From the NCBI GenBank assembly GCA_000708835.1, contig DF236954.1:108647-172646 (forward strand): 64,000 bases of DNA. The letters run 5' to 3'. Below the pieces are notes generated by a model, which worked only from the letters and a program-made list of their open reading frames with translations, did not search any database and had not been told where the DNA came from. This document shows positions 5,701-28,569 of this stretch, in pieces. Source of the stretch: Klebsormidium nitens (lineage: Eukaryota; Plantae; Klebsormidiophyceae). The position numbers and the translations under genes are program-made. Numbering within the stretch: the stretch's first letter is position 1; the number at the start of each line of letters is the position of its first letter.

Positions 5701-8700
5701 CGAACTTGCGGAGCCAGAGGAGCGCGAGCGCGCGCAGCTCGTGGAGCGCCTCCGAGTGCCCTGCGACAACTAGGGTGGCGGACACGAGCTTCAGGGCTTC
5801 GGACGCGCGGCTTGCTGACACCTGGCGGAACGGCCGGGCTAGGAGGCGGGTCGTCTCGGGTGCAGAAACGTTTTCGGTGTCGGGCTGGGAAACGGAGGTC
5901 AGGAGATCCTGGCACTCAAGTAGCTCTGCCGCTTTGGTGACCGCTGCCAGCACCTCTTCCGTCCTCTTGAGGCTTTCGCACGCCTGCAGGGAACGAAGGC
6001 GAAAAAAATGTACACCACCGCTATGGGTCTACTTGAAGCTAAGCCTTTTGGGTCCTGACCGAAAGCAACAGCGCGACAGTACAGAACCAAGTTTGGTTAC
6101 AAGACCAAATGTCCAAGCACAACAACGGAACAACAGTCACAGACCAGCACATCCTTTCCAGCCTAGGCGACTCAATTCTCAGAGAAAGGTAAGGAGAGGT
6201 TCACCAATCTCTCACCTCAGCCCAGACCTTGATGCTCACGCCCCCTCCACCGGGGTTTCCCGCCTTGGCGCATTCTGCGTACCACGCCCGCGCCGCATCG
6301 AACTCGCCCAGCATGAGGTGGCAGTTCGCGGCCCGGAGCCGCACCTTCTCGAACTCGGGGTCGATTGCGCACGCCGTCAGACAGTCCGAGAGCGCCTCGC
6401 GGACGCGCCCGAGGGCCATTCGGACGGCGGCGCGGTTGCTCAGGCACAGCGCGGCCGATTTTGCACACCTGCATGGAAAAAACCCTTTTGAAATTTCCAG
6501 TCATTCGTCCGCATCTGTCCGAAAGTAGATGGAAGAAAACTAGAGCGACAGAATGGCCGCCTAAAGCGCCTATTGGACGCGCCCGCGGGCCATTCGGACT
6601 GCGGCAAGGTTGTTCAGGCACAGCGCGGCCGATTTTGCACACCTGCACGTGAGATGGAATGCACGGACTATTTGCGCATCTAAAGATCGCAGAGGGAGAT
6701 GGAAGAAACATAAAGCGGCATGAAGGCGGCGATCCGAGAGCGTCATTCAGGCACAGCACGGCCTCCTTTAGTATACCTGGCGATGGTGCAAACTCCCACT
6801 CGCTTCCAGAAGACACCCTCAGGAACGATCCACAATATCTCCAGACGGCCTCGACCTTACGTACGCCAGTGAATGACTTCAACTGAACATCGTTTGTAAA
6901 GCAAATTAGATTTCACTCGAATCTATCTACTTTGGTAGACGCTCGCTTCAAACACCCAACGAAAGTGAGCACTCTGTACCCGCTATAAACTCGACCTTCG
7001 AGTTGACTGCGCAACTATTGAAAGGACTGCGTCCGATGTCGGCAAATATTCTCACCTGTCGTACACGAGCCCGTCTCCGGTCGTCACAGCGTCGACGCCC
7101 TTGGTGTAGAGAGCCTCCGCGCCCTTGTAGTCCTTACTGGCATACGCCTGGTTCCCCTTGAGCCGCCACCGCTCACAGGTAGATGCGGCTTCCGTTGCCT
7201 GAGCGGTGCTAAACGAGACCTGCAGGTTGGACGGGAATGTCAAATGGGGAGCATCTGAAACTTACTCAAGAGCGTACGCGTGGAGCCTGCTCCATTACCT
7301 GAGCTGTGCTGAGCGAGACCTGCACGTTAGTCGGAAATGTCAGATGGGGATCTTTTGCAATAAATCCGGAGTGCTGGCTGAAAGTCAGGGCGAAGACGAG
7401 GACCGCCTGCTTTGGCTTGCAGGCATTGCGGTGGACAGTTCGCTCAAAACGCAAAGTAATCAATCAAGCCTCTGCACAGATGCACAGCAGCGGAGATAGT
7501 CTTATGGAGTTTCCAATATCAGCACCGCGCATAACAACAGGCGGCAGTCCCTTTTCTCAACATCGTCGCGACTTTGCAGCAAAAAAGACCAAGGAAAGCC
7601 GCTTGTGTAAGTGACCAAGTAGTCCGAGATGCAGGATTGCAGCAAGCAGACGTCTTGTCGGCCAGCAAAAAGCGCATGCGCAGCAAACGGTGTGGTAAGC
7701 CCCAGTCATCAACACCGGTCTCAGCAAGAGATAAAAAAGGCGGTCTGACATTTTTTGTGATGCGCCCAGAAACCCTCAACCCGCAGCCGAAACTTATGAA
7801 GCGTCTTGTCCTCAGCCTGTGCACTCACCACATCCGGAGGTAGATCGTCGAGACCACCTTCAACCTTCGGCGCACCCTCTTCGACTGGCGCGCCGCTGGT
7901 CGGATCAAAGTACTGAAAGTAGCTTTCCGAGCTTTCTGGATAGTACACTTGGTTTCGGGACGGTTTGCGGCCCCCTGGCCCCTGAACCTCCTGCCTCTTT
8001 CCGTTTCCGTTCTCCTCGTCCATGGCTTCCGGGCTTGCCACGTCATCGGCTGTCAGATCGATGTACGAAGAGGCCCCTCCGGAAAGAGAACTAGAGTGGA
8101 GCTTGTCCCAGCTCGCGCGGGCTCTGCTGGGGCCCACCCTGCGCGCTTTCCGGACCGGTTTTGGCGACTGCACCTGAGCAGCGCTTGTCGCTGCGGGATG
8201 GGGCATGGTGGACCCGGGAAAGATCGGGTTAGACGAGTCTGGGAACGTTGGCTTGCTAGGATCAGCGTACTCAGTACCTCCAAAGAACGGATTGCCGAAG
8301 ATTGGGTTAGGGGAGGTGGGGAAGGTCGGGTTAGGAGAGGCGGGAAAAGTCGGGTTAGGAGAAGGGGGAAAAGTAGGATTAGGGGAGGGAGAGAAAGTCG
8401 GGTTAGGAGAGTTGGGGAAGGTCGGGTTAGGTGAATCCGGAAACTGGCTGCCTGCAAAGGTCCACTCTGGAAGCGCGCTGCTCTTTGCTGCATCGGAAGC
8501 GCCATAACCCGGTGGTTCCGGAAACCTGCCCGCCCCTTTTGGCGCCCCTGGGGCAAAGCCCGGGCCACTAACCCCAAGCACCGTCTTCTCTGCTGACTGC
8601 CTCGGAGCCTTGCCTCGCTCCAGAGACCGCCTCCGGCCGCCTTCGGTCGAACGCCGCAGCGAGTCGCTTCGCTCCATGGACCGTCTCGAAAGGGACGAGC

Positions 8701-11700
8701 GCCGGGGCGACTTGGGCGACGTCGGGCCTGACGCAAAAACGAACGGCCCGGCCACCGGTGGCGGTCTGGGGGGGCTGCCCGGGGACTGGGCCTGGAAGGC
8801 AAACGGCCCCTCAGCAGCCTTTCCCGCACCGAAAATGAACGAACCTGCTGAAGTCTTTGGTGCAGCATCCGTTTTTATGTTCGCTGGAGGAACCTCTTCG
8901 GCTTTACTTGGTTCGTTGAACTTCGGTTCCGCTGGTCCGCCCCTTTCGCCCTCTTTGAAGCCCCCGAGCCTGCTAACCGGCTCGTCAATCCCCTCACTGA
9001 CGCCCTCGGCCGGCTGTGCACTGCTGCTCTCACCACCGTTTGGGGCCTTGGCTACGCTCTCCGCCTCGTCCTCAGCATCGCTTTCGGAACTCTCCGTCAA
9101 CTCTTTTTGATCCACCGAGCCCAAGTCCATCTCCTCGACATCAGCCCCCAGCGCCTCTACTCCTTCGGCTGCTCCTGTAGCAGATTCGCTCTCGTTCTCA
9201 ACCGCGCCAGCGCCATCTTCCCCCCCTTTGCCCACCTCTCGCGCCGTCTTTTTCAGCCGCTCTAGTTTCTCCTTCTCCCCACGGACCCAGTCCTTGTCCT
9301 GCGCCTCCGGGTTCACGTCATCATCGCTCTGGCTATCGCTCTCGCTCGAGTCGTACTCGTACGGCTCCTTAGGCGGCGTCCACCGACCAGTCCAAGCCTC
9401 GCCCCCTTTCGCCGTCCGCTTATCGCCCTCGCTCTCCTCAAAGCTGCTGCTGCCCTCTTCCAAGTCCCCATCGTACGACGCACTAACCCGGACCCCATTC
9501 ACGCCCGCCTTCCGGGGCCCCTTCACACCCGCCCTGGGCTTCCCTACCCCCGTCGCTGCGTAGCGGTTGTTGACAGTCGCTCCGAAGCCCTTGGCTTCTG
9601 CCGTCCCCGCACTCTGCTCTTCACCAAGGCCCTTATCCCCCCTTTTGGCAGCGGCCGGACTGGCGTCCTCTTTTCCGACCCGCTTCTCCGGCCCCGCACC
9701 ATGCACATCTCCATTTTCGAAACTCTCCCGCCCGGGGGAGATGTCCATCGGCTGGGGCGACTCAACCCTCGCCTCCTGCTCTTCTTCCATCGGTCCCAGA
9801 GGTACCCCGCCGGCCCCTGGGTTCGCGCTCCCGCTCTCAACAACCCCAGAAGCAGCAGAGGCTGGTTTGGGACTTGCGGGTATCGGTGGCTTCCCTACGG
9901 GAGTCCGCTGCAAGCTCCTGGTCGCCGTGAACGCGGTCTTGCCGGAGGGAGACGCCTTCTTGGCCATCTTCTGCTCTGACCGCCGCTTCGCCGGAGTCCC
10001 TGGGGACACCCCTCCACCGCCAAACGCCACAAACGGGGGCACTTGGGGGCTTCCACCAACCTCAGGACTCGAGTCCCGAGCTGCAAAGACCGGCTGACTC
10101 TTGCCGAACACCCCAGCGCCGAAGCTCTCTGAAGTCGTGTCCTCGTCTGGAATGGAGCCCTTGAAATGGAAACCCCTGAGACCCTCGAGGCTTGAAGCGG
10201 TGCCGGCAGCGGCTCCCTCAAATGTGACTCCCTCTTTCGACTTCGCCCCAGCTAAGTGGAGCCTCTCTGCGAAGCTCTGGCTGAATTGCGAGCTGTCAGC
10301 CTCGCCAATTTTCTTCCCCAGCGACTCGGGCTGATCGCGTGCGCCGCTCGCGCTGCCTCCGCTGCTCCCAGCACTGAAGACAAACGCATTGATGCCTTGC
10401 GGAGGGGCCGGTTTCGCCTTTTCAGGATCCGGCAGCGGCGACTGGACAAACGAAGGGGAGGGGAGATGCGAGCCAAAGCCTGGCGCAGCCGTTTGATTGG
10501 AGGGGGCCTGCGGAGGGGTCTGGAAGACGAAGGGGTTTTGGGCTGCGAGCGCCTTTGCTGATTGAGCACCGAAAACGACGAAGGCATCCCGTTCTGCTGC
10601 CTTGCTGGGCTGCTGGTTCTTTGCGCCTACCGCTCTCTCTGGAGGGAAAATCGAACTGAAAGCAAATGGTGCTTTGCCTCCAAAGAGCACCTCCGGGGCT
10701 ACATGGAATAAGGAAGCGCTCTCTTCGTTTGGCTGAGGCTTTGGAGCGGGCTTCTCCGCAGCCCGTGTGCTGCTTTGTGGCTTGGAGGGACTGACGGGGG
10801 GGGCTCTTGGCTTGGAGAGGTTTAGCTTGTCGAAGCCCTGAGCGAGGCCTTCCGCTTGCTGCTTTCGGTACATGGTGGCAAAGGGCCGCCGCCTGTCAAC
10901 CACTGGCTCTTGCGCCTCTCCCAAACCCTGTGCGCTTGTGGGCCCCTTCACGGGGGCTGGAAAAGCAAAGGGCTCGTCCGCGAACAGGGAAAACCCCTGG
11001 GTTTGCCCTGGCCCAATGCTCCCCTTGCTCTCATTGGACCTGCTCTGACGCTCTTCCACGGTCGGAGATGCTGCCCACGTTGTGTCCCCCAAGCCAGATG
11101 CAGCGTCGGCAAACGCATCGAAGAACGTTGCGTCGGCAGGGGGCGGGCTATTGAGGTCCAGGAAGGAGCTGATCCCAGCCGCCTCCGTGCGCTTCCCCGC
11201 GCCTTTGAACCCCGGCCTGTCTCCGTAATTGGCCCTTATCGAATCAAGCCCATCATACTGTGCACTGCTTCGGTTTCTGCTTGGAGCCACCCGCCCCTGG
11301 GGAGCACTGCTTGGGTTTCTGCTTTGACCAGGCGCTGCAAGCCCCCCGCCAGAGGCCAGCCCAACCCCTGACGGGCCTTTGCTCTGACTCTTGCCGCGTG
11401 TAGGTACTGCCTGGTCCCCGAAGCTCTCCCGCGACGTTGTTGAGCCCGACGTTGTTGGGCCCCCTAATCCTGCTGCCCCCCCAGCTTTCTCCCCAAGCAC
11501 GCCAACATCGAAGCCCCCCGGCTGTGAAACTGCAGGTGCATTGCTGCTACGACCAGGCGCCGGTGCCGCATACCTCGGCCCGGCTGCGTCTGGACCTCCG
11601 GTTTTAGGATTTGCAGCAGCCTTCACCGCCCCTGGGTTGCCCCTCCACGGAACATTGAAAGCAGCCGCTGCAGCGGCCGCCCTCTTCGACTGCAGGTTAC

Positions 11701-12150
11701 TGTCCGGCACGTCAGCCTTTTGAACCCCTGACCCTCTGACCCCTCCATCTCTCCATGCAGCAGGCGCCGGTTTCCCCTGGTGCGCCCCCCCAGTCTTTGC
11801 GCCGCTCTCCCCAGACCTGCGCTCCTCACGCTGGAACGAGTCCCTATTCTGGTGCTCGTCCACCATGCCGCTGGAGCTCCCAGTTGCATCCCGACCGAGA
11901 CCATCACTGTGTGACTTTTCAAAAGCCCCCAGCCCTTCTCTAGCTCCTGACCCCTTGACGGCGAACCTTGAGTTCAAGCGCCCGTGCCGAAACCCTCCGG
12001 CTGCTGGCTGTGTCGCCCTAGTTGCGAAGCTAGCACCCCCAGATCCTGCGTCCTTGTTCTGACCAGCTGATGCACCAGCTCCAGTTGATGACAAGTTGGT
12101 GTCATTCTTCGACGACACTGACGGGCGAGAGCCTGTGGTCGACGAGAACC
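2702..12150 (-). CDS. TPR-repeat + C-terminal J-domain co-chaperone (DNAJC7/plant TPR-DnaJ-like) with ~1430-aa low-complexity N-terminal region
   Basis: Exons in transcript order: ~12150-7829, 7219-7056, 6468-6228, 5983-5393, 4907-4701, 4138-3845, 3397-3269, 2956-2702, all GT-AG and phase-compatible. TPR motifs (RLKGNQAYASKDYKGAEALYTKG; CLSNRAAVRMALGRVREALSDC; AGNAAFQAGKREVAIEHYSAAL; CLANRAAAYQALG) and J domain (DHYKVLGV...IKKAYRKAALRHHPDK...RLFKIIGEAYNVLSNP). Start codon unresolved: an acceptor lies at ~12151 with an in-frame stop just upstream, so either an unfound 5' exon or a downstream ATG is used. Confidence 0.92.
6390..6650 (-). repeat. Tandem duplication of an acceptor plus first ~75 nt of a TPR exon (decoy exon with stop)
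   Basis: TGCAG|GTGTGCAAAATCGGCCGCGCTGTGCCTGA occurs at both 6642 and 6468. The upstream copy reads CAKSAALCLNNLAAVRMARGRVQ*; the real exon reads CAKSAALCLSNRAAVRMALGRVREAL. Confidence 0.9.
7195..7350 (-). repeat. Tandem duplication (~100 bp period) of intron end plus exon start in the TPR-DnaJ gene
   Basis: CCCCATCTGACATTTCCGACTAACGTGCAG|GTCTCGCTCAGCACAGCTCAG (copy ending 7299) versus CCCCATTTGACATTCCCGTCCAACCTGCAG|GTCTCGTTTAGCACCGCTCAG (real exon from 7219). Confidence 0.9.
8297..8443 (-). repeat. Coding 24-bp tandem repeat (~6 copies) encoding (x-S-P-N-P-T-F-P)n
   Basis: The plus strand shows GGGAARGTCGGGTTAGG-like units every 24 nt. The minus-strand translation is FPDSPNPTFPNSPNPTFSPSPNPTFPPSPNPTFPASPNPTFPTSPNPIF. 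Confidence 0.9.
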
Positions 12151-14302
12151 CTGCAGGAAATCGGGAGCCAGATCAAAGATTTTCAAAGCCCGCTTTTCAA
12201 AGCTTGCGATTTGGGAACCAGCAGTTCGATGTTGTGAGAGACCTTAAAGGATTGCTGAATAGATCTGACTGTGGAATGTGGTTGATCAATGCCACCACCT
12301 CCTATTTGAAGAGGCTTGACTGACTTCAACAGGACTTTCATGACTATCGCCGATCGTCTCTGCTCGCGATAGAAAAAGGGCAGTGATCCAACAAAGTGTA
12401 CACACTTCTGATGTGACAGATTCTGCTGACAGGCAACTGAGGCTTGCATGGAAGTTGTCCAACTTGAGCGTATCCACGATGTTTCAAAGCAAACAGTAAG
12501 AAGCGTCATGTTGTCATGCCTTACAAAAGAACAGACTGCAGGATACCGCGCGACTCGTACAAACAAAAATCATAAGCATGTCCAAATGCAGAGGGAGCAT
12601 GATCAGGATGTACACAAACCTGCGAACTCTCGGAAGCTGTCATCACCACCGAAGCCCAAACCGGAGCTGAAGTAAGACTGTGAGCCGCCTCCCTTTGCCA
12701 TATCAGTACAGCGTTCCCGACAGTCTTTGGTGCTGAATGACCACCTTTAGCCTCTGACCTGCAAGAAGCTTCTCCTGAGTAAGCACACAAGTGCTCCAAC
12801 ATTCCGATGCAAGATGACAACGACAAACTTCTGCACAGCATCAAACGGCAATCGAAGCATCCCAACACAACAACTTTTGACCTGGACACTCTCTACATAC
12901 GCCTAGGTTATCTGTGATCAGAATCGGAAATTGTTTTGCAATTCAAGAAAAGCATAGGCTGAACAGACGGTGCACCACCAAGCAACTTACTCAAACCTTT
13001 CTCCAGACCATCTCATCTGATTATCCCTGTTAAGAGAGCGTGCTGTATTGTTCAGTCCAAGTAGCAATCCTGCAGATACACACCGGGACACACCCTGACA
13101 TTCATGCATCCTGAAAGAGCAGGCTGCTATTCATTACGCATTCATTACGGGCCGGGGTCGCAGAAGGAGACAAACCTTAAGTCCTTGATGTTTCTGCGAA
13201 ACTCCGGGCCATAACCTCCTTCCTACAGGTCCTCTACAGCACTTGAATGTTTCCCTGATTGCCATCTCCGTCACCCTCCTCGTTCCCAAGGTCCAGTAAA
13301 GGAATCTGGGCTTCGTCTCCTCCGTTTTGACTTTTGAGAGTTGAGCTGCAGAACTGCGTGTTTGAAGCCTAGGTACTTGGCGCCAAAATGAGGTGCAAAA
13401 TTCATAGATCGAGACGAGACGCCTTGACAACATAACCACACACTTCCTCAGTGTATTTTGATTGTTTTTGCACATATACGTACCCTGAAAGCAAGCTGCT
13501 GCGGACGTATGTATCTGTCTAATATTTATTATATTGCGTGTTCAGTTTTTGCCACATGCAAACGACAGGATCGCGTATACCAAAAGAATATGTCAATATG
13601 GTTTGCTTCTAAGATACTAAACTCAACCAGGGGGACCTGTGAAAGTTGAACTTAAAACACTCTTGAAAGTCCAGGACCACAGGCAGCTGCTCTGAAGCAG
13701 AGCTGATCTGAGCGCCGGGCCATGGCGAGCTCCAGGGTGCATCCCCGTTGCAGGAATGCATCGAACCCGTATCACGAGTGCGTTGAATTCTGCTTTAAGG
13801 TTATTGCTCAACAGGACGAGCAAGGGGAGGCGCCTGGTGCACCTCAACATGGAGGTATACTTATGCCTTTACCACAAGGTCTTTGTGAATGGAAATCTTC
13901 CATTGTTGTTCCTTGGTTCTGGACGTGGTTCTCTGAATCTGCTTGCATTCACTGGCGCCAAAACGTGGATGATTAGTCTTTGTAATAAGGGGTTGATTCG
14001 CATGGTGATTGTCACCTCAGTGCACGGTGTTTAGCGCACCTGTTCTCTGTATGCAGAATTGTGTGGAATTTTATAGTGAAACTGCTAAGCTTTTGGAGGA
14101 TTCTCAAGCCTCTCCTTGTCTTTACAAGTGCCAGCAGCCGAGAGCAATTATTGAATGTAAGTTCATGAGGACCAGCCACATGGCCGGAATCTACACCTTC
14201 GTTGCGTAGCCAGTCTGCCTCACTGGCAAAATGAAAGTCGTTCCAGCGCAGTAAAACAACCCACAGTAGAACCCTAATCCTGTCGCATTGTTGTCTGTGC
14301 AG

Positions 14303-16851
14303 GCCCCGAACCCTCAGCCAACGAGCTGCCGACTGCTTTCGGAAGGGCAGCCAAGCGGCCAAGGCCGTACATGCAAAGAGAAACTGCGCCAGAACCTGCT
14401 TCAGAGGAACCGAAGCAGAATGACAGTCAAGCAGGCCCTGGTTCGGAAGCGCCTGGCCCGGGCAGGGGAGAAGACACTGGTCCGGGGGGCAATGGGGCGA
14501 GTGGACAGGATGCCGACTTTGGGGCAAATCCTACGGAGGGCATGAACGAGCGGCAGAAGAAGCTATTTGTGTTGAAGCAGAAGATGGTGAGCCGGACGCA
14601 TTTTTTGTCTGGTCTGAAAGTAGATAGAGATGCATCTTCTTACATGCTTGAATCAGAGACTCTTTGTTTCTGCGAGCTTCTTGTCGTTCTCAAGAGAGGC
14701 ATTGATCTGCTAGCAGATTGACCAGGAATCTGCCTGAGGTTTATGGCAGCCTGGAATCATTCGCTTGGGCATTGCAAGTTCAAACGGGGTTTCTATCCAA
14801 AACTTTTCGACAACAAGAGTATTATCGTGGACTCGCAAACCTCTCAAGCTTTTTACATCCTCATTTGGAGACGCTACTTCTGCATTTGTTTCCAGACATC
14901 TATACCCAAGGACTGCATTATAACAGCCCCCATCGGAAGTTATATTCAATAACTCTTCCCTCCCACGAAGAAGCAGAACTGGGTCAATCTTTTATAGCTC
15001 CAACTCTGCAGTAAACATTGTAGACTTTCCACCAGACAACCATGTTTCTGGACCATATTTGTGGAAAAATTCCCAGAACCTGAATCGGTAGCTCCGTTTA
15101 CCTGGCCAAACCGTGCCCCACGTCTGATGCAGAGGCTAGAGCTCTCCTTTATCAGCTGTCAAGGACCACGCTTAACCCTCCTTTTGACCAACTCTGCAGA
15201 ACAACGCCCGCAAGCTGAACCAAACGGCGGTTGTGGCGGAGAAAAAGCGCGCGGAGGCGCCTGGGGAGAGCCGGGGTGTGTCGAAGCAAAAGTGGTACGA
15301 CGAGAAGAAGAAACGGTTAGGGAAGGAACTAGAGGCGAGCGGGCTGGACATGAAGCAGGCGTATATGCTGGACACTGTGGAGGACGCAGAGGAGAAGTAC
15401 AAGAAGTGGGACAAGAAAGAGACGCCGTTTGGGTGGGATGGTGCGTGTCAATCGATGCTTTTCCTTCAGTTTGTGTCGTGTATGTGTCCGTTGTGTAGTC
15501 AGTCCTTAGCTGACCGAGTTAGCTTCTGAGCAGATGGTTTGAAGGTCGCATGACTTTGTGGGACGAGCTTTGTACATTCTGCCTGCAAAACAAGCAGACC
15601 GTAGAAGATTGTGTTTCAACCTGTCTGGTGTAAGGGGTGGTGACTCCGCTTGTAAAAGTCCTATAATTCCTTCACGGCGTAGCTCGATTTCTCCAGCATT
15701 CTGAGTCGATGGGAGGTGCCTTAGAACCAGTAGCGGCCACTTTGCTCTCTGACGTGCAAAATCAGCAGATCGCTCGTCAACTTTGCTGAAGATGGATTAC
15801 AAGTAGCTCTATGATCAGTCCAAGAGCATGATTTGTAACGAAGTAGCTGATATCGCTCAAAGGTCGATCTTCTGGACAGAGCGGCTCAAGGTAGGTGTCC
15901 TACAGTGTTCTCGTCAGAGCCTGAACGCTGGCTGTTTCGTGCAGTTTTCAACCAGAAGTCGCTGTACAACGCTTACAAGAAGCGGACAAACGACGTGCCG
16001 TACACCCAAGAGGAGTACGAGCAGGCCAAGGCGAACGACCCAAACTTCTATGCGGACGACTCCAACTTGCAGTACGGCCAGGTGGGACCGTCTTTCCGTC
16101 TTGTTTTCCTGTCTTGTTTTCGCTCTCCCACTCTGCAACAACCTGGTGCGGCAGAATTAGAAATAGGTCGTGAAGGTTCTCTTTGTCGCAATATGTTAGG
16201 TGGATGGTGGAGCGAAATTCGAATCCACAAGGTCTTACCGATTACGGACTGCCTGGTTGGCACTCGTGGTATCCTGCATCTCTTTCTGCTATTATTTCCC
16301 CCTATATTAACGGATGGTGCCCCTCTAGCCTGTCCTCTCCTTTGCTTTCGAACGCAAAAAAGACCGTTCTCTGCTTGAGAATCCTGTCTGGATCGACAAA
16401 TGGAGACTCCCGTGGGGACCGGCTCTTGTTCCACTCTTGGCTGACTCTGGGGTGTCCCTCTTCATCCCAGTGCGTTTCAAGAGACTTTTTTGGGAAGTCG
16501 GCGGTTTGTACTTGTCAATCCGTTTTGGCTTCCTGCTTATCCCGTCGCTTTAAGAACCTCCAGACTTACCGTCGACTGTGACGAGCTTCTTATCTCACCT
16601 CAATTCGTCCTCGCCCCGTGCAGTCCAAGGCGGTTCCGCAGGAAAACGTCGACCGCATGGTGGGCGAGCTTAAGGCCCGGGAGGAGAAGCGGAAGCAGTT
16701 CAGCCGGCGTAGGAAGTTCCATGAGGACAAGGATATCGACTCCATCAACGAGCGAAACGCGCACTTCAACAGGAAAATCGAGCGCGCATTTGGGAAGTAC
16801 ACGGTCGAGATCAAGAACAACCTCGAGCGCGGAACAGCGCTGCCTGACTAG
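14303..16851 (+). CDS. SYF2: Pre-mRNA splicing factor SYF2 (Prp19/NTC complex; p29)
   Basis: Exons 14303-14586, 15200-15440, 15945-16081, 16624-16851. They encode [27 protein letters not shown]...[27 protein letters not shown]...NLQYGQ/...[50 protein letters not shown], the characteristic SYF2 C-terminus. The start is uncertain (ATG 14371 or an upstream exon). Confidence 0.95.
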
Positions 16852-19615
16852 CCAGATGAGAGAACGGGTGTCGAGTTCCGTTGTACATACCCGAAGGTGG
16901 CAGGTAGCTGTCGCGGTCCCGTACTCCTCATTACTGATTTGTCAAGCTTCTTTAGCTACATGAAGCGCGCCTGCTGCTCAGTCGCAGTGTTTTGCCGATT
17001 TTGAGATTCGGCGTCCCTTGTCGTTCATTGTCGAGCACACTGTTTCCTCCTTATCAGAACGCAAGTATGCTGGCTTGTTGGACTCGAACTTTATTGAGAA
17101 GCGCGCTTGTTTCCTTTTGAGTACGAGGACCGCGATTTTTGCATGCGATGGTGGTGGTCATAAGTGATAATTTGCCTGCTGGATGTACGTTTTGCACGTG
17201 AAATCCTTACCATTTGGGGTACACTTTTATTGAGTTGTGTTCTCTTCACTATGCTAATCACCATTGGCCGAGCGTCCTCCCCTTGAGCAATGGGGTGGCG
17301 TGGTATTCCGCGAGGGAGGTATTTCGCGGCACACTTCGGTGTGACTGGTGAAGATGGACGGGCAGACTTGGCCGCTATTAGCCAGAAGTATGGCTGCTAG
17401 TGAGGTTCAGCCCCACATGGCTAACTGGCTAACTTGATTTTTAAAAGTTAACCCAATCATTAGCGGCCACTTGCAAGTGCAAGGCAAGAGGACGCAGGCT
17501 TGCCAGTTCAGACACTGCGAGCTTTGGTTTTGACTCCCTTACCCTGACCTTCTCGTCTTACTGTGCCTCATGCAGACCTGCGGTCCATTGACGAGGGACT
17601 TTGGATTCCCATGCCAGCGTTTGGGAGGGCTTGTCCATGCAACTTTCTATGAGTTGCACGTATGGGTGCACCTATCGACGATTTTGGAGTGGATTCAGAA
17701 GTGCAATGATGATTTGTTCCTGTTCACACTCGATTAGTACCAATCTCAGGGGTTCTTTGTGTCTTAATTGGTCCTGGCAGGGATTAAAGGCTAAATGATG
17801 ATCACAATATAGTTTCCGTAAGAACTAGAATGATCTACATGCAAACAGCCAATTGGCATGTTGAATTGCCTGATGACTGTTGTATCTCGGGTGGCATTCC
17901 GATTTAGGAAAAGTGCTATTGCAAAGGTTCGATCACGAGCAGCTCAGGCTACGGCCGCCATCAATGTGCGGCGTCATGGCGTCGTAGGCCGTGCATTGTA
18001 CTAAGAGAGGCTATATGATAGAGCGGGTTTCTATTGCGTATATCGCCTTTGTATAATCCGCCATTGATTGTTTAGCTTCGTATCGTGGCATCTATGTATC
18101 GTAATAGACGATTAGATATGCATGTGAAGTCTTAAAGATAATCATGCATCCTGGGTCCAGACTTTTAGCAAGTACAGTATAAGCTCATGACGGCCGCGGC
18201 CGGCGGCCGCTATTTAAATCGTGTATGGTCGACGTATCATTTAGTATAGGCGGTCGTACGGTACTCGACGATCGCCGTCCGCGCGTCCCACGGTCCACCG
18301 ATCGCGGCCGCCATGCCATGGTATGGCAGGGTTCTGACTTTTCAACATACCGTACGGTTCCGTACCCTCAACTGATGACGTATGAACGTACGATGTGCCG
18401 GTAGTAGGTAGTAGGTACTGAATTCATGCCTCTTAACCCACGCGGTCCAAGATGGCCGGAAGCGTGGAACGACCCACTTTAGCTACCGGGGAACTAAAAG
18501 CTCGGGTTTACACCGTAGTCTGAATCAGAGTGATCATTGATGGGTCGGATTCAAATCACACCGGGAGAAATTACCGGGTCGATGTAGAACTGGTTGAGGG
18601 TTTAACCCGTGTTTCTAAGTCAGTAATTTGTACGGTCAATCCAGAATTCTAATTCTTCTTCCGCCATACGCCTCGGTTCAATATTTCCCGGCGATTTATT
18701 AGGTACATTTTAACCAAAATATTCGCCCTAGGCATGCGTCCCGAGTAAGCATCTTCGACGGCTTATTGGAAAGGGCGTACAGTGTAGATTCCGATTGACG
18801 TCACAAGGTTCCGTCGCGAATTCAACAAATGCCAGAGCGCATGCACGGCACCGAGCCGGGCTGTTTCGACGGTATTTAAACGGGTTTTTATGAAGAACAG
18901 GGCGCAAAATTCGAGGTACAATGTGTGCCATGTGGCATGTGCACTGGAAGTTCAGGAATCAGTAGATATTCTTCGTCTGTTTGTATGTTTGCTGCCAGCT
19001 GTCAACACCTGACATCAACACCCATGTTAAAATGCTCGTTGCTGCCACGCATATATGCGCCAGAGGCCACGCCTCCTGCGCACTGCCATGCAGTGTGCCC
19101 AAGTACCTCTCCACGCATAATGCAGAACTGAAAGGGGGATGCCGCACTGCGCACGAGGACGCCTTAAATAGGTAGGTGCACATAAATTCTGTTGAGAGTT
19201 CATCAAGATTTCAAGTATCCTGCATGATGGTCCGATCAAGAAAGCCGGAGAAAGTCTGTGGGAACTTATAAGTCTGAATCAGCTAAGATATTTTCGACAT
19301 TTGCAGCTGGTTGTACTTGCTTGAAGCTTCCCAAAATTAAACTGATGCGAGACCGCCCTCCGTCGCCCAATCTCTGACATACTTGCATACCACAGCAGGG
19401 CGCTAGCCGAGACGCCGCAGCGTGCTGCTTACGGAATTGCTGTTGTTGAGCCTTGAAGAAACGAGGAGTTGAGAGACCGCTGCTGAATTGCTGCAGTTGT
19501 AGTCGGTATCACGTTTGTAACACCTCCTCGAGTCGTAAAGAGCACGGCAATCTGTGCCCTCCAAATAGGAAACAATGTGTTCATCTGATCAGCAAGCACC
19601 TTTTCTACCGCCTTG

Positions 19616-19648
19616 ATGGCTTATTCGATATTGCTGCGGAGTCTCTAG
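19616..19648 (+). promoter_or_regulatory. Candidate uORF (MAYSILLRSL*) ending 18 nt before the RLK-A start
   Basis: It lies in a 5' block homologous to the RLK-B leader, where the same ATG gives ATG GCT TGA (55377-55369, minus strand). Inclusion in the mRNA is not shown. Confidence 0.4.
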
Positions 19649-19666
19649 CTACCATCATCAGCCAGC

Positions 19667-22600
19667 ATGTTGCAGAGGATGAATAGAGCCTTTCACCACA
19701 AGAGGACCTCTGCCGGTTTCGCTCTTAGCCTTGTCCTGCTAGTATTCGTTCAGCACAGCAGAGCAGACTATGTAGAGACTGCGCCTAGACCTGGGGCTCC
19801 GCTTCCTCCATCCATCATTCCTGGAGAATGTCCCCTGGTCTTTCTGAAGGCAGACATCCAATATGCAAAGCAGACTGCATGCTCCTCAGGACCAGGTGAC
19901 TCAGGTGAGACTCACGTTGTAATGAAGTCAAACAAACCTCTTCTACTCGTGCCACCGTCTAGGCTTACAGGCTTGCTGCAAGAGCCGTCCGTGGTATTGG
20001 GTCGGATCTTATGTGTGACATTTGAAGGAGTGACAACTCTGTAACAAGGTGGGGCCCTTCATAGTAGACACTACAACCAGCATGCCAGCAATCAAGCTCC
20101 TGTAGGCAGCAATTGTCCTAAGCAGACTTCTTCGAGAACGCACAATATCCGTTGCTGGATAAAGCTTTGTAAATATAGCAACTCTAAGACCCGGATGTTG
20201 GCTTAGTTCCATGCTGTTATCTGCTTGCGAAGCTTAGACTTCTTTGAGAGAGCTGCATTCCTGCTCTCTGATGACGCACACAGGCAGGCGTCTCTGCAAT
20301 GGTACTAATGATATGTATTGTCCATCCTCGTACTGATGCCACATGGAAGATTTGCCACAGCAAGCAGCCCTTCCCCAACGAAGTTCCTGGATTCCCGGAT
20401 CCAAGCTCAGATGCTGTGTTGCTTCTCCTGAAACGAGCAATCGAAGAGCACGGTTTCATGACTTTCAAGCTGACAATCTGCTCCCTCCTTGCCTTACCTA
20501 GGCACGTCTAACGCGATCGCTGTAAGCGCAGCTGGTGCATTCAGCAACAGCTCAATTACTTCTTGCTGCATCCATATGAAGGCAGTTCTATGGCAGGCCC
20601 GAGTGCGATATGCCAATGAGACTGGTCGCCTGCTCCTGCCCCAGGCATCCGCTGACGCTTGTATCCAGGTATATATCTTACCCTGTTTTTGATCACCTGT
20701 TGGGGTGATCACCTGCTATGTTTGTTGGTTGCCCTGTCCTGGGGTAACATTGGTTGGCGCTCTCTACACCCAGCTCCCCGGTTGAGAATAACTAATAAGT
20801 TGGGGGTCCTTAAGCCAGAATTGTATCAGTGGGGAGTGCATTGCGGGTCAAGTTCATACGGCCGCCAGAAGTGCTAACCAGCATAATCCATGGTAGACGC
20901 GAACATTCTAAAGTCAAAATGGACCCCTTGCATCTGAGATTCAAGGCAAGGTACTTGGCTCTGAAATGTCTGTGCCCCATCCTGGCTCTGGTTTGCAGAG
21001 TTTGAACACTTCAGCAATAGCTGCTGGACTACCTGCTCTCGGTTGGTGCGACATCAAAAGTCAAATGCTCTCAGAGGATGCCGGCAAAGCCTGTGGAGAT
21101 GATCTCACAACCGTGTACGATTTCTGGTCGGCATCAAGTCGGACCTTTCCAGGTATGTTAGCGATGCCAGGACCATCAATTGTGAGCCTGCCATTCTTGA
21201 CAAGCTTCGTCTTTCTGCTTGTACTCAAAGAGAACAGTATAGTACTGGCATTGAAAGCGCGCTTGTTTGGCAGCCAAGGCAGATTCATATCACATTCTAT
21301 GAGACGATGCCACGATACAGGGCTGGCCCCACTTGTTTCGTTGCGAGCAAATTTCTGAATGTGAGTTTAGACCAACTCAACTCGTTATGCAGGAGTTAAG
21401 CTTCTTGAGCACCATCTGAAGTTCGAGGTTATTAAGTTGTCAGCTGAGTGCAAGAAGATGCATCCAAAAACTTGCTCCGGTGTGTCTCTTTGTAACACTT
21501 CGCTGGTACTTGCAGGAACGGTGGGTACCAGTTGCTATGGGGAAAATGCAGATTGCGGTCTCTGCACCACCCTCATCACAAACAAGATTATGTCACTAGG
21601 CAGCAGCACGCCGGCTTTGCTGGCAACGACGTCATGCCAAGGTGAAAGCATCACTCTCTCCCGCACCTGATGCCTTTGCTTGCAAGATCTGCTGTGAAGA
21701 AGGATCTGCTGTTAACAATCTTGTTTCAAACCGCTTGATTGAAACAAGATTGCTAAAAGTGCGGCAAGTTTCTTGGGGCCTTTGATGCAACTTTTATCCA
21801 GTCGACAGATTGACCACTCTGTCTTTCAGGGCGTCCAGGTCTCCAGGAATATTGTTGCCGATCGTCGCACACAGCACAAGCTGTCATGGAAGACCTCACT
21901 TCGAATCTTGTGCTGGCTATCCACTCACGTAACCTACTTTTGGTGAGCAACATTTACGTACGCTACAAGAAGGGTTGCTCAGCAAAGATTACAGAACATG
22001 CGCTCAAAGCTTCTGACATTTTCTTTTTTTCCTGCAGATCTGGCCCAGGTCGCAATGGCTGCGGCAGCGTACCCTGTCGCCATCGCTAACGGCATTGCTC
22101 GGTGCCTGTATAACGTGGACATTGAACCCATCCCTCAAGCAAGCAAGTGCACAGCGTATGACTGGTCGAGGCAGAACTGGACGTCCATCGTCCGCAGCTG
22201 CGGAGCAGAGAGTTATCGAGCGGATCGCTGCTGTCAACTCGTACACGGACAGTACCACTTTATGCTGGTAACCGCCCTGAACAAGACGCGTTATGGGATG
22301 GACCAGGTGAGACCAGCTTCGAAGAGATGTTTGCAGCGAGCCGGGGATTTGAGGCCGGAGCACATCGATTTTGTAAATGGGCTTTGTTGACGATCAAGAG
22401 GGTCCGATCATTTTCGCTTCCATCTACTTTTCGTTGCTTAATGGCTGCAGGTACGGTCTGATAAGATAAGGGCAACTTGTTGCTTTTCCTATCTCAGACA
22501 GGCGATATGTCCTGCTGCTACCTACCAATACAATGCCTACGAGGTCTCTCGTTCCAAAAGGATTTTCTCAAAGACGATCGGGCTTCTCGTTTCTTGAAGC

Positions 22601-25600
22601 CTCTCTTGACGGCTTCCTCGAGGGCTTCTTGCCTGCGCAAAGACGTTAATCGTCTGGACCTTTCTCAGCGTAGGGATTTGGCAGCTTTCGTTTCGGTGGG
22701 TTTTGTGTCAAAAGTGCTTGGCTTCCATCTGGTAACAATTCTGCGCAACCAGGAAATATGGTTGATCCGGTCAGGAAAGTACCGACTTTCGAAGAGAGGC
22801 CTGCCTCCACTCCATACATCCTTTTCTAGGTTAGTCAATTCTAAGGTTAAGTTGTGGTGAGGTTGAAGGTAACATCGAAAAAAGCGGATCGGAAAAAGTT
22901 CACGTGCTCCGCACCCGTGCACACCCTAAACCGCCTTCCTAACTCACCCCATCCCAGTAGTAGAGCTTGAACTCAATAAACCTAATCCTGGGACCAATTT
23001 CCAATATTTTAGGGGCAGGCCGAGGTGTGCTTCTCGGAGTACAAGGCCGGGCTCGCCGCGCATGGCGTCTCCCCAGCCACGCCGGAAAGTTGCCGCGTGA
23101 CCGCCGCGACCGCCCTTCTGAACATCGGCTGCTACAACTACTCCACGCTCCAGCAGCAGGTCTCCACGCGCTACTTCCACTACTTCGACGGCAACTGCAC
23201 ACACAGCGGAGGCGGCGATTGCAGCCACTGCTCGCAAACGCTGCTCGACGTGGGGAACGAGCTTGCGAACACCACAAGCGTCGCGTACCTGAACGCGTGC
23301 CAGCAACTGGTCGTGCACCAATATTACCTGTGGCTCGCCAATGTTGAGTCAGTCCCCGAGCGCGGAAACTGTTACTACCAGTTCCCCCCGGGGCTGGAGC
23401 TCACGATGGTCCCCTTACTCCCGAGCAAAAGCGCCTCTAACATCGCACTCATAGCCGGGGTTAGTTGTGCGAGCGCGGTCGTGCTCCTTGGGGTATTGGC
23501 GATTGTTGCATTCGTCCTATGGCGACGTTATCCGCTGTACAAGGCCGAGTGGGACGCCGAGAAGAAGACGCTCGGCCGCTTGTCGTCGATACAACAGCGG
23601 GTCGTGGGGAACCGGTTGCAGGTCTTCACGAAAAGGCAGCTGAGCAAAGCGACTCAGGACTTCAGCGAGAGCCGTGTGGTTGGCGTCGGGGGATCCGGGA
23701 AAGTTTACGTTGGAGAGCTGAACGGGGACATCGTTGCAGTAAAGGACTCCACGTTTGGGTCCAACAATGATGGAGCCAAGGTAAGAAAGAACTTATTTTC
23801 TCGGGATTGAGTTACGGCTCTACATTGAAGACACGGACAGCCACTCGCATTCTCGACTTCCCCTTGAAGCAGGTTCTTGATTGTTTTGAAGCGCTCTTGC
23901 AAGACTGCCGAAGTCAGACAACTGCTCTTTTTGAAGAAGGCGTTCTCGTAGAGAAGTAGCTTCGTAGCAAGAAACCTGGACACCAGCTTATCGGGATTGC
24001 GTAACAGCTGTACCGACATGAGGACCTTTAGAGTACCTGCTTGGGCGATTGCTATATGATGGTTTGATTCATAACTTGTTCATAATTCGCTCAACTCCGA
24101 TGATTCTCGAGCAGTCCTATCGTAATTTGCGTCTTGTCGGAACGCCACATTTTATCGTCAATCCGGAAACATATGACGCTCTTTCGTTCTCACAACCTGA
24201 CAGGTATTTCTTGCCATACCACAGACCTCTCTTGCAATGATCAGAAAGCGCACGGAGTACCGGTAACAGACCTTGTGAAGGGCATCAAAGCGGACGTGAA
24301 GCTTTCCCGACTTCGTCGAAGGGCACTTGATAAGCTACTAAACCGGGTTCTTAACCCATTGATCTACCTGTCTTTGTTGCAGGAAGCATGGAACGAGGTT
24401 GCGACTCTGGCCCAGTATCGGCACCGTCATCTAGTGGTCCTCAAGGGCTGCTGCCTCACTGGTTCAAACTCCTTGTGAGGCTTCCTTTTCAATCCCATCA
24501 ACTGATCTGCAAGCGGCCAGGCTGTCGGGGCTTTTGAGTTTCCGTAGCTCTCAGCTCTTCAACATGAATTGGACTTTCAGTCGCTCTTTCGTAGGTTGCT
24601 CTACTCTGTTCTGTTGAGATTGGCAGCTCGTAGGCCACACCTCTTTTGAATGCAGTCTGGTACGTTATCCCTAAACCTTTGTACGCTTCAGACCTAATCC
24701 CTTGTCGTTGCCAGATTTGCCAGGGCACAACAACAACCTGCACTGGTTGCCGTGCCAATTTTCTGCTTGCCCCTGGGGTTACGGAGCGAAGAGAGCAGTC
24801 TAGTATAGTTTTCTTGGTTGTCAGTCAGGGATTTCCCAACAGATTGGAGAGAACGACCGCTGAACTAAAAAGTCGCTTCCCCGGGTTTAATCAAACCCAA
24901 CCCCTGAGCCCGAAGCTAACATGCTCCGCACCCATACCCACCTTTAACCCCCACCTAACCCCACCTGTCCCCGGCCGTGACCTACAACATAGCCGGTAAT
25001 TCAGAACAAAATCAAAACTAAACCGCTAAACCGATCCTGTCCTCCCTTCCGCAGCCTGGTCTACGAGTTCATGGAGCAAGGCAGCGTCGAAGACCATCTG
25101 TGCCCTACGGCGGCCGTCTCGGCTGGCCGCGCCACTGAGAGCAGTGTGCGCGCGCAGTTTTTGAATTGGCCCACCCGAGACAAGATCGCCCTGGGGACGG
25201 CCAAGGGGCTTGCCTACCTGCACGAGGTGAGCCCCGTCTTACAGGGCGGTCACAATTGAGTTCTCAGGGAAGTGGGAAACGTTCTCTGAGGGGTTCCATG
25301 CTCCCCGAGAATCTGTTTGGTCGTATTTCCGTCAGGATGCGTGGCGCAGAAGCTCAAAAGCCTCGCGTGATTCGTAGTCAGACAGATTGTCCGGGGAGGA
25401 AGCGCCAACCGTTCCTTCGTGTTGATACCGGCGCTCGTAAGGCATAGTCGTGTCGAATTCCTGGGGGAGATTCCCCTTTTTCGTCCCTGAAGGACGGAGA
25501 GTCGGTGCGCCCCGGAAAACCTATTTGTGAACGCCCAATCAGACATAAGGAGAGGCTGCAGACCAGAACTTGCGATACACACAGTGAAGCTGGACTACGA

Positions 25601-28569
25601 TGTTGGATCGAGTGATATATTTTGCTGTTGCTGTACGGGGCTGATCTTTAGATCCGGGTTACCGAGGCCTGTTTTTTGCGATCTGAATCGTCAGCAGATC
25701 AAGTGTCCGCTGCATGGGCGAGCTTCACGAAAGGGGCTTCGAATTGGCGCACGCTTTTTTCAATCTGTTCATAGAATCGGATAAATTCTGCAGAACGCTG
25801 CAATGACAGAATTGTCGCACGTTACAACATCGTGGAACAAATCATGGCTTTGTTTCTGGGCGAGGAGCGGAACAAGGAAGCCGGGGTCGTCCCACCGAAG
25901 CCTTCCTCCTATGATCGCCTGAACTCTCTTAGCTTGCGAGTCCTGCAGCCGAGACGAAAGCTGTTAATCGAATAAAGAGCGGTCAAAGCGTAGACAATTG
26001 AAAATCTGGTCGGTATGGTTCCCTAAGGAAACTTTGAGTAGGGGTGTGCCCACCTTTCTCTTTGCGAGGAAAGAAAAAAGAAAAACAAGAGAACAAGTGC
26101 CACCTTGTCCTCCTCAGGAGTGCAAACCACGGTGCATTCATCGAGACGTGAAGCTGAGCAACATCCTGCTGGCCAACGATTTCGAACCCAAGCTGGCCGA
26201 CTTCGGACTGGCAAGGCGGACGGACCCACAGGACACACACGTCACCACAGGTCAGTGTCTCTGTCTTGAAGGTAGCACGCACAGTAGTCGGTGGTTCAGC
26301 TCGTCCAGCGCAAGCGCATCCGGCGCATTCCTTTCCGAGAGGTATGATGATGTAGGCATGATGTGAACCCGAATGTTTGCTTTCTACTCAATCATTCTCC
26401 GGCTTGTGCTAAAGAAAGAACTCCTGTGGGTGCAATCCAGATCTTTACCTTTCTAACCATGCTCTGCGAAGCTTCCCAAAAGGTTGAGTATTGCCCTTAC
26501 CAATTTGTCTTAGTCTCAGCATGTTTGATGCTGAGAAGCGCCGAGCGAATCACGCTTGATCTCTTTCCCCCATCTTTTTATTGGTCGTCACCCCCTGTCG
26601 CGCGCTTCTATCATCAGCGACCACTTTCCAGTGTATCTTGCTTCGTTGCCTGCAGCGATCGCCGGCACGTGGGGCTACTTGAGCCCCGAGTACATGGCCA
26701 CCGGGAAGCTCACCGAGAAGAGTGACGTGTACAGCTTCGGGGTGGTGCTGCTCTGCCTCGTGGCCGGGCGACGGCCCACTCAATCCAACGCACCAGAAGA
26801 GCAAGTACATATTTTGAAGGCACGTTCTTCGTCGTTTGCTCGAAAAGTATCTGAGTGAGGTTTATAAAGACGTCTTCTTTTGAGGATTCCACGCAATGCC
26901 CCTTCATTTGATTTGTACAAAAAGACCTAGGGTTGAAACGATGTACCTCCCGCTCATTCGAAGGTGATTGCCCTTTCACCCGAGTAGAAGATGCTGACTA
27001 AGATTCATTTCAAAGTCCGCAACACTGGCGGAACTTGTTCAAAGTTACTCACTTAGACCAAGTTCATGTAGTGCGCTGCAATTTAGCCCGGTGGAACCAT
27101 CTTTCAACAGGGTCTCGTTTTCGTTTCGTTTCCATGACGCAAGCATTCTCGGCAAGGGGATCCGGCTACCCCACATCTCCCCGCAGGGAAAAAGTTGTCG
27201 TCGGTCAACTTTAAGCCCCTTCCCGACTTCCATTTACCTCCAACAAATACGGTTTGCGAAACCAACAGAAGGTGACCCGGTTCTAAAAGCGCTACTTACA
27301 ATCCGCCAGATTCACCTGGCGGAATGGGCGTGGGCCCTGGCGGAACGGAGCGAGCTCGAGCAGCTGATCGACCCGCGGCTCGAGGGGGAGCGACACGAGT
27401 TCGCGGCGAACATGGAGCGCATGACTAAGGTGAGGAGTCGCTTCACCTTTTGCATTTTCCGTTCTGCACCACGTGAGAGCCAGCCGTGTGTCTGCTCTTG
27501 GAAGATGCGCAGGGAACAATTAAGAGTAACCCCGATTGCAAGGCAGTACTTGCCACATCGCCGCGGACGTAATCACGTGGCATCGGAGAAGCGCAATGCG
27601 CTGTTCTCTCTGTAGTCGCCGGAACAGAATCGGTCCCCCGACGCCGAAGTCGTCTTTGTTGTGACTTGAAGGTCACAGGTCGCTTTCAGTCTTGATCTGG
27701 GGTTGGCGCAGCTTTTGCTGTCGCCGAATTGGAGTTGCGTTGTAGGACGTTACGGAGCTCGCAAGTGAAGCTGGCTAAGAACTCATCGTCTCTGGAGCCC
27801 TTTAAACGGAGCCTTTTTGCCTAGTCAGGCCCTTTCTGACGTCTTTTCTCGCGTCCATTAAGCTGGTCGGGTGCTTTTGGTTCGCCAAGAGCTCGAGAGG
27901 CGTTGACATGGAATTTCCGCCGACATGTATAGAGGCAGCACTGCGTGCATTGCATTCGCCCTAAGATGTCTGTGTCAGCTTTTTCCGGGCGCTAGAAGTA
28001 TGGCTGGCGATTCCTGTTCCATTACTCTCACGTCCTGAGAATCGGCTAATCTAGTTTTTCAACTAAGAAGTCTCCTTTCAACTTTAAAGATTTCGGTGGA
28101 GTCTTCGATCCGCTGCGCAACGGACATGCCACGTCCTTCAAGCGAAGTCGGCGCCCATCCTCAATTTTGAATCAGATGAGGCCACAGTTCTGCAGCTCCG
28201 TTCCACTCGCCAATCATGCGCAAGCTGTAAGAATCTCCTTTTTTACTGTTCTTCTCCTTCCCGTCCTCGATACTTTCCAAGTCTGAACCTCCCGTGGTTT
28301 GCCGTCATCTGCAGGTTGCCCTGCTGTGCGTCCACACGGCGGCCAGCGTCCGGCCCAGCATGCGGCAGTGCGCGGACATGCTCATGGGACGAATGGAGGT
28401 CCCCCGACTCCCGAGGCGGCTTCCCTCCCTCTATACAGTCTCCTCGTTGGCATCGTCTGATCCCGAAAGTTCAGCGGGGCTCTCCTCGGGGCAACTGAGC
28501 TCGATCCTAAGCAGGGGCGCCGGGATTTTGTCCATGTCAAGTGACTACGACCCGAAAAGCGTCCCGTAA
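19667..28569 (+). CDS. Receptor-like Ser/Thr kinase RLK-A (RLK/Pelle) with signal peptide, two tandem 12-Cys SPARK-like ectodomains, TM and RD kinase
   Basis: 11 exons: 19667-19895/19904, 20502-20668, 20999-21152, 21516-21641, 22038-22306, 23013-23780, 24383-24474, 25055-25226, 26118-26250, 26656-26804, 27310-27429, then last exon 28315-28569 (12 including the last). Signal peptide [16 protein letters not shown]; [28 protein letters not shown]; kinase motifs [58 protein letters not shown]. Confidence 0.93.

Follow-up and report, generated by a model that had tools for sequence, protein, structure and literature searches.

The gene RLK-A, at 19667–28569 on the plus strand of a 64,000-nucleotide stretch of the Klebsormidium nitens genome (contig DF236954.1 of assembly GCA_000708835.1; the whole stretch is referred to here as the window), encodes a receptor-like kinase (RLK) that carries two SPARK domains in its extracellular region. 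We conclude that RLK-A is very probably a receptor kinase of type I that crosses the membrane once and belongs to the published double-SPARK expansion of K. nitens. It is an annotated gene, and its architecture was published already, along with the definition of the SPARK domain and in the same species. The window is eukaryotic and intron-rich, and also contains RLK-B (55328–47169, minus strand), an inverted paralogue of RLK-A. The two-module ectodomain had been pointed out in a preliminary description of this DNA, and we present here the evidence for it, together with estimates of selection, comparisons between the modules and searches with predicted structures.

Two SPARK domains in one receptor kinase

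We placed the ectodomain exons of RLK-A by means of GT/AG introns over 19600–23900 (+), with continuous open frames and consistent phases. In the exact exon map, the exons of RLK-A translate residue for residue into the database protein P0205 (GAQ77883.1, 885 amino acids, K. nitens), and those of RLK-B give an exact match to P0206 (GAQ77887.1, 868 amino acids). Both proteins are annotated as 'Protein kinase superfamily protein [Klebsormidium nitens]', and both genes consist of 12 exons with matching intron positions. Their scaffold, of 514,841 bp, carries a third paralogue, P0204 (GAQ77876.1), outside the window. The RLK-A exons were scanned singly against Pfam, and the database proteins P0205 and P0206, which the window encodes, were used for whole-protein analyses. 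These proteins were found by a word search seeded with the paralogue P0158; a word search with P0009 missed them, and a search of a representative protein library with exon 6 of RLK-A returned K. nitens paralogues, mostly as exon-sized fragments, and no full-length RLK-A.

The ectodomain of RLK-A is encoded by six exons from 19667 onwards, and consists of a signal peptide followed by two consecutive modules with 12 cysteines each. Successive cysteines are spaced by 17, 29, 1, 31, 19, 15, 26, 7, 3, 24 and 24 in module 1 and, nearly identically, by 17, 10, 1, 30, 21, 13, 22, 8, 3, 23 and 24 in module 2, which contains the string NCYY. The preliminary description had located both modules at 19667–23400 (+), and the translated exons contain every protein string that it quoted. 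It had also stated that all 24 cysteines are conserved in RLK-B, and we confirmed this on the inverted paralogue, whose ectodomain exons are each 64–81% identical to those of RLK-A. The full set of cysteines is likewise kept in every family member in which both modules are present (13/13). Several N-glycosylation sequons are carried by the ectodomain modules of RLK-A.

We compared the proteins with the Pfam SPARK profile (PF19160), which has a length of 162 and a gathering score of 25 bits. P0205 scored 58.0 bits (E 1.9e-15) and P0206 scored 53.4 bits, and each protein contained two stretches that individually passed E 0.001, which is the number of matches that the preliminary description had led one to expect for P0205. 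The best stretch in P0205 covers residues 53–210. Exon 2 by itself reached 24.7 bits, while exons 1, 3, 4 and 5 gave no SPARK match when scanned singly, each being too short alone. Two SPARK stretches together with a kinase domain are common to nine further K. nitens paralogues. RLK-A therefore belongs to the SPARK domain family, with a score above the gathering score and the 12-cysteine signature in each module, and the two SPARK domains encoded by this gene of the K. nitens genome do not overlap and lie in one polypeptide.

Pfam also identified the kinase domain of P0205 (Pkinase, E 5.4e-41; PK_Tyr_Ser-Thr, E 4.7e-38). The catalytic residues K562, H670-R671-D672 and D690-F691-G692 are conserved, and in an alignment of 15 family sequences the glycine loop, the VAVK lysine and the HRD, DFG and PE motifs vary little or not at all. 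This near-invariance of the catalytic motifs leads us to expect an active RD (arginine–aspartate) kinase. In the AlphaFold2 model of P0205, which has a mean predicted local distance difference test (pLDDT) score of 61.8, a helix at residues 458–488 corresponds to the membrane span, and the top structural matches of the kinase part are plant RLK kinases and IRAK4, with Z values of 15–18. In its catalytic residues, its fold and the single transmembrane helix that precedes it, the RLK-A kinase is of the RLK/Pelle (IRAK-like) type.

Retention of the genes and origin of the second module

RLK-A and RLK-B each have twelve intact exons, with no stops or frame breaks, and the ratio of nonsynonymous to synonymous substitution rates (dN/dS, Nei–Gojobori) between them is 0.36 in the ectodomain (dS 0.62) and 0.14 in the kinase and tail (dS 0.42). 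These values indicate purifying selection on both copies, with more rapid change in the ectodomain than in the kinase. The family has many members and shows local duplication (three of its copies share one scaffold), and in such a setting either or both of these genes might be decaying, functionless duplicates within an expanded family. We regard this as quite unlikely, since all exons are intact in both genes, dN/dS is 0.14–0.36 at dS 0.4–0.6, and the 24 cysteines and all catalytic kinase residues have been retained. RLK-A and its inverted neighbour are recent local duplicates kept by purifying selection.

Relatedness of the two modules was analysed using module 1 (residues 50–256 of P0205) and module 2 (residues 261–443) as cut from the 15-sequence family alignment. 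Pairwise Smith–Waterman alignment of module 1 with module 2 within one protein was at noise level (z 1.3), as one might see if module 2 were an unrelated cysteine-rich module that shares its cysteine count with SPARK domains by chance. However, Pfam recognises two independent stretches of SPARK when given the whole protein, and in the paralogue P0003 module 2 alone spans positions 9–151 of the SPARK profile at E 2e-8, while in P0160 the stronger SPARK match falls on module 2. Moreover, profile-to-profile alignment with hhalign joined the two modules over 115 columns (probability 93.5%, E 2.2e-7), with the CC pair, Cys5 to Cys8 and the CxxC pair in register, and a hidden Markov model (HMM) built from either module matched the other module in most paralogues. 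An unrelated origin of module 2 is thus decidedly improbable, and the noise-level pairwise alignment indicates that the repeat is old and diverged. Throughout the family, first modules align with first modules and second modules with second ones, which places the internal duplication before the radiation of the family. These profiles and alignments show, at the level of sequence, that modules 1 and 2 arose by a single ancient duplication within the protein, before the family radiated. Intron placement is not equivalent between the modules, with four introns in module 1 and a single one in module 2.

The preliminary description had proposed that structure prediction be used to look for two equivalent folds. 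Outside the membrane, the P0205 model is all-helical, and the same order of helices is predicted around the same cysteines in both modules: one helix runs up to Cys2 and is followed by a long one bearing the CC pair, Cys5 sits on the next helix, Cys6 and Cys7 are at short helices, another helix begins at the CxxC pair, and Cys11 and Cys12 lie on the last two. Each module would probably form six disulfides. Two kinds of observation weigh against the interpretation of both modules as SPARK domains of the same fold. First, exon 6 scanned alone gave a weak SPARK match (E 0.014, profile positions 67–149, residues 322–403 of P0205), and neither a shorter cut of exon 6 nor exon 5 alone gave any. Second, the ectodomain is modelled with moderate confidence, with pLDDT values of ∼65–90 in blocks; the model of the paralogue P0208 has a mean of 75.5.

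Evidence that both modules belong to a single transcript came from several sources. Within exon 5 a single open frame runs from the last part of module 1 into the first part of module 2, and two complete Trinity open reading frames of K. subtile, P0154 and P0217 (877 and 884 amino acids), contain both modules and the kinase. Divergent double-SPARK kinase genes are also present on two eukaryotic metagenome contigs, L001 (JGI 3300060285, 109 kb; gene at 4800–15600) and L002 (JGI 3300060284, 65 kb; gene at 4200–14700). Their ectodomains share 25–45% identity with that of RLK-A and their exons are laid out in the same way, so the double-SPARK architecture is not confined to the reference proteome of K. 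nitens.

Some gene models in the family are clearly imperfect. P0003 (GAQ84805.1) and P0155 begin 45 and 22 residues, respectively, before the end of module 1, and P0208 (GAQ81555.1, KFL_000830370) ends after the first 60 residues of the kinase domain, within the N-lobe. At least some of the K. nitens models with a 'single SPARK' or no kinase thus give the impression of truncation, and to judge from their sequences such members may be annotation artefacts of double-SPARK kinases. These imperfect models could also be taken to suggest that the doubled ectodomain of RLK-A is itself an artefact, in which a secreted or glycosylphosphatidylinositol (GPI)-anchored SPARK gene has been fused to a downstream single-SPARK kinase gene, but the intact exons, the open frame of exon 5, the independent K. 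subtile transcripts and the exon layout shared with both metagenome loci make this very unlikely indeed. The modules are not separated by any stop, hydrophobic anchor or further signal peptide, and intron phases run on continuously from one to the other.

Table 1. Coordinates of RLK-A, its exons and RLK-B in the window
Feature	Position	Strand	Content
RLK-A, whole gene	19667–28569	+	Signal peptide, SPARK, SPARK, transmembrane helix, RD kinase; 12 exons
Exon 1	19667–19904	+	Start codon, signal peptide, Cys1–Cys2 of module 1 (CPLVF ... ACS); donor GT at 19905, phase 1
Exon 2	20502–20668	+	CC pair, a 12-residue motif and Cys5 of module 1; Pfam SPARK E 3.4e-5, profile 29–71 of 162
Exon 3	20999–21152	+	Cys6–Cys7 of module 1
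Exon 4	21516–21641	+	Cys8, CxxC pair and Cys11 of module 1
Exon 5	22038–22306	+	End of module 1 (Cys12, ARCLY), short linker, Cys1–Cys4 of module 2
Exon 6	23013–23780	+	Cys5–Cys12 of module 2 (to ∼23372), transmembrane helix (∼23430–23530), juxtamembrane region, kinase glycine loop, VAVK
Exons 7–12	24383–28569	+	Remainder of RLK/Pelle kinase domain (HRD, DFG, SPEY), Ser-rich tail; stop codon ends at 28569
RLK-B	47169–55328	-	Inverted paralogue; 12 exons, two SPARK modules, all 24 cysteines

The acceptor of exon 6 contains two AGs six bases apart at 23010–23019 (+) (tag/gggcag/, with slashes marking the two splice points), and the same arrangement is seen in RLK-B near 52141 (-). The annotated model uses the upstream acceptor, with the exon starting at 23013, and this adds Gly-Gln; use of the downstream acceptor (exon start 23019) would drop these two residues and keep the frame. 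Elsewhere in the window, an uninterrupted open reading frame of 1465 codons is located at 7721–12118 (-), in a stretch of 63% GC within an otherwise intron-rich region. The encoded sequence is of low complexity (Ala, Gly, Ser, Pro), with many FxF/FG-like motifs and no Pfam match, and it carries a run of SPNPTFP repeats that corresponds to a 24-bp tandem repeat at 8304–8431.

Fold searches and a possible mode of action

We searched for structural relatives of the ectodomain using the model of the paralogue P0208, which comprises two SPARK modules, the transmembrane helix and the first 60 kinase residues. A Foldseek search of this model against the PDB yielded nothing at E 0.001 or better, and a PDB sequence search found the kinase stub only, with no match to the ectodomain. 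VIA-align of the full 885-residue P0205 model returned kinases only. These searches brought up no solved structure with the SPARK fold, so the structure of such an ectodomain would be new. Structural neighbours of module 1 in the ESM Atlas were land-plant SPARK kinases and GPI-anchored SPARK proteins.

VIA-align of the P0208 model against 48,161 chains detected the kinase N-lobe and two weak matches, to LLG2 (6a5e_D; Z 5.3, root-mean-square deviation (rmsd) 3.3 Å over 71 residues) and LLG1 (6a5d_B; Z 5.1, rmsd 2.7 Å over 70 residues). Both matches fall on the first half of module 2 of P0208, at residues 227–303 of the model. LLG1 and LLG2 (PDB 6a5d and 6a5e) are LORELEI-like GPI-anchored co-receptors, which present RALF peptides to FERONIA, and, as RLK-A modules are modelled to be, are helical, disulfide-rich and extracellular; they are small plant proteins. 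With Z values of 5.1–5.3 over ∼70 residues they were the only matches to the ectodomain, at a level below that which helical models reach by chance, and with no link to them from Foldseek or the PDB sequence search; Pfam, at E values up to 10, gave no link of the ectodomain to LLG or lipid-transfer-like families. We consider it improbable, on the strength of these models, that the N-terminal half of the SPARK module (Cys1 to ∼Cys6) shares the LLG/LORELEI fold, and treat the similarity, biologically suggestive as it is, as a lead and not as a relationship. If the lead were true, SPARK receptors including ARK1 and ARK2 might recognise cysteine-rich peptides, and the algal double-SPARK form could act as a built-in pair of receptor and co-receptor.

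From the general behaviour of plant RLKs, one would picture RLK-A as displaying a glycosylated, disulfide-locked double SPARK module outside the cell. There, the two modules together would bind a ligand or a cue derived from the wall, and binding would activate the RD kinase, probably via dimerisation or a co-receptor, with the signal relayed by phosphorylation. Ectodomains that diverge faster than the kinases, as in this pair, would be expected of receptors diversifying in recognition.

Comparison with described SPARK proteins

The SPARK domain was defined, with its signature of 12 conserved cysteines, by Montero et al. (2021, PNAS 118:e2105281118; PMC8237591). According to that study, K. nitens has 17 SPARK receptor kinases, which make up >10% of its RLK repertoire and form a monophyletic group of their own, and the double-SPARK architecture in this species was described there (PMC8237591). 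RLK-A is likely to be among the 17, because the paper says that all SPARK-bearing RLKs of the species were used; its main text gives no per-gene detail. The published K. nitens double-SPARK kinases and RLK-A come from the same organism and annotated proteome and have the same layout (two SPARK domains, a transmembrane helix and a kinase), with no substantive difference between them. What is reported here on exon structure, selection, profile comparison of the modules and searches for related folds goes beyond the main text of PMC8237591. Our literature search found no further paper joining SPARK and Klebsormidium. When double-SPARK kinases were sought in other organisms by a profile word search, only Klebsormidium proteins came back, which, given the insensitivity of the method, is no evidence of absence.

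The preliminary description had suggested that a double-SPARK receptor may be an algal or ancestral architecture, relevant to the origin of symbiosis-related RLKs. That a streptophyte alga has a receptor with two tandem SPARK domains, where land-plant kinases have one, is borne out; the novelty that this implied is not, as the architecture had been described by Montero et al. (2021), an outcome that the preliminary description itself had named as grounds for refutation. As regards the proposed relevance to the origin of symbiosis receptors, the published monophyly of the Klebsormidium proteins argues against a direct ancestor–descendant link to ARK, and thus against direct ancestry of ARK1 and ARK2.

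The SPARK-I proteins (ARK1, ARK2 and SPARK1; formerly URK-2) share with RLK-A the 12-cysteine SPARK domain, the transmembrane helix and the RLK/Pelle kinase, as well as the signature CPL.F ... CC ... RYANxTG ... CxxC. In contrast to the two SPARK domains of RLK-A, land-plant SPARK-I proteins have one, or none in monocot ARK1/ARK2. We have not filed RLK-A under SPARK-I because the SPARK RLKs of K. nitens form a separate monophyletic group according to Montero et al. The role of ARK is in the maintenance of arbuscular mycorrhiza (PMC8237591, PMC11287157), a symbiosis that Klebsormidium does not have. The SPARK domain of Marchantia ARK is dispensable for rescue of rice ark1, and no ligand is named (2024, PMC11287157).

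Land-plant RKF3 and URK-1 combine a SPARK ectodomain with a kinase (PMC8237591), as does RLK-A, but have a single SPARK domain. The angiosperm SPARK kinases P0031 and P0150 (670–684 amino acids) were matched by both module HMMs. A protein of Liquidambar formosana, P0021 (KAK9292329.1, 820 amino acids), matches SPARK in three stretches (212 bits) and a kinase, partially, in two. The model probably merges tandem SPARK kinase genes and does not represent a true multi-SPARK receptor. GPI-anchored SPARK proteins such as rice SEMI-ROLLED LEAF1 have the same extracellular domain as RLK-A, but in one copy and without a kinase; OsSRL1 has been linked to cell-wall formation (as cited in PMC8237591).

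Among these systems, RLK-A provides a clean and intact example of the algal double-SPARK receptors, with the close paralogue RLK-B nearby. It could serve to address the binding partner of SPARK and the arrangement of the six disulfides per module, and also whether the single SPARK domain of ARK, SPARK1, RKF3 and URK-1 descends from one module of a doubled ancestor.

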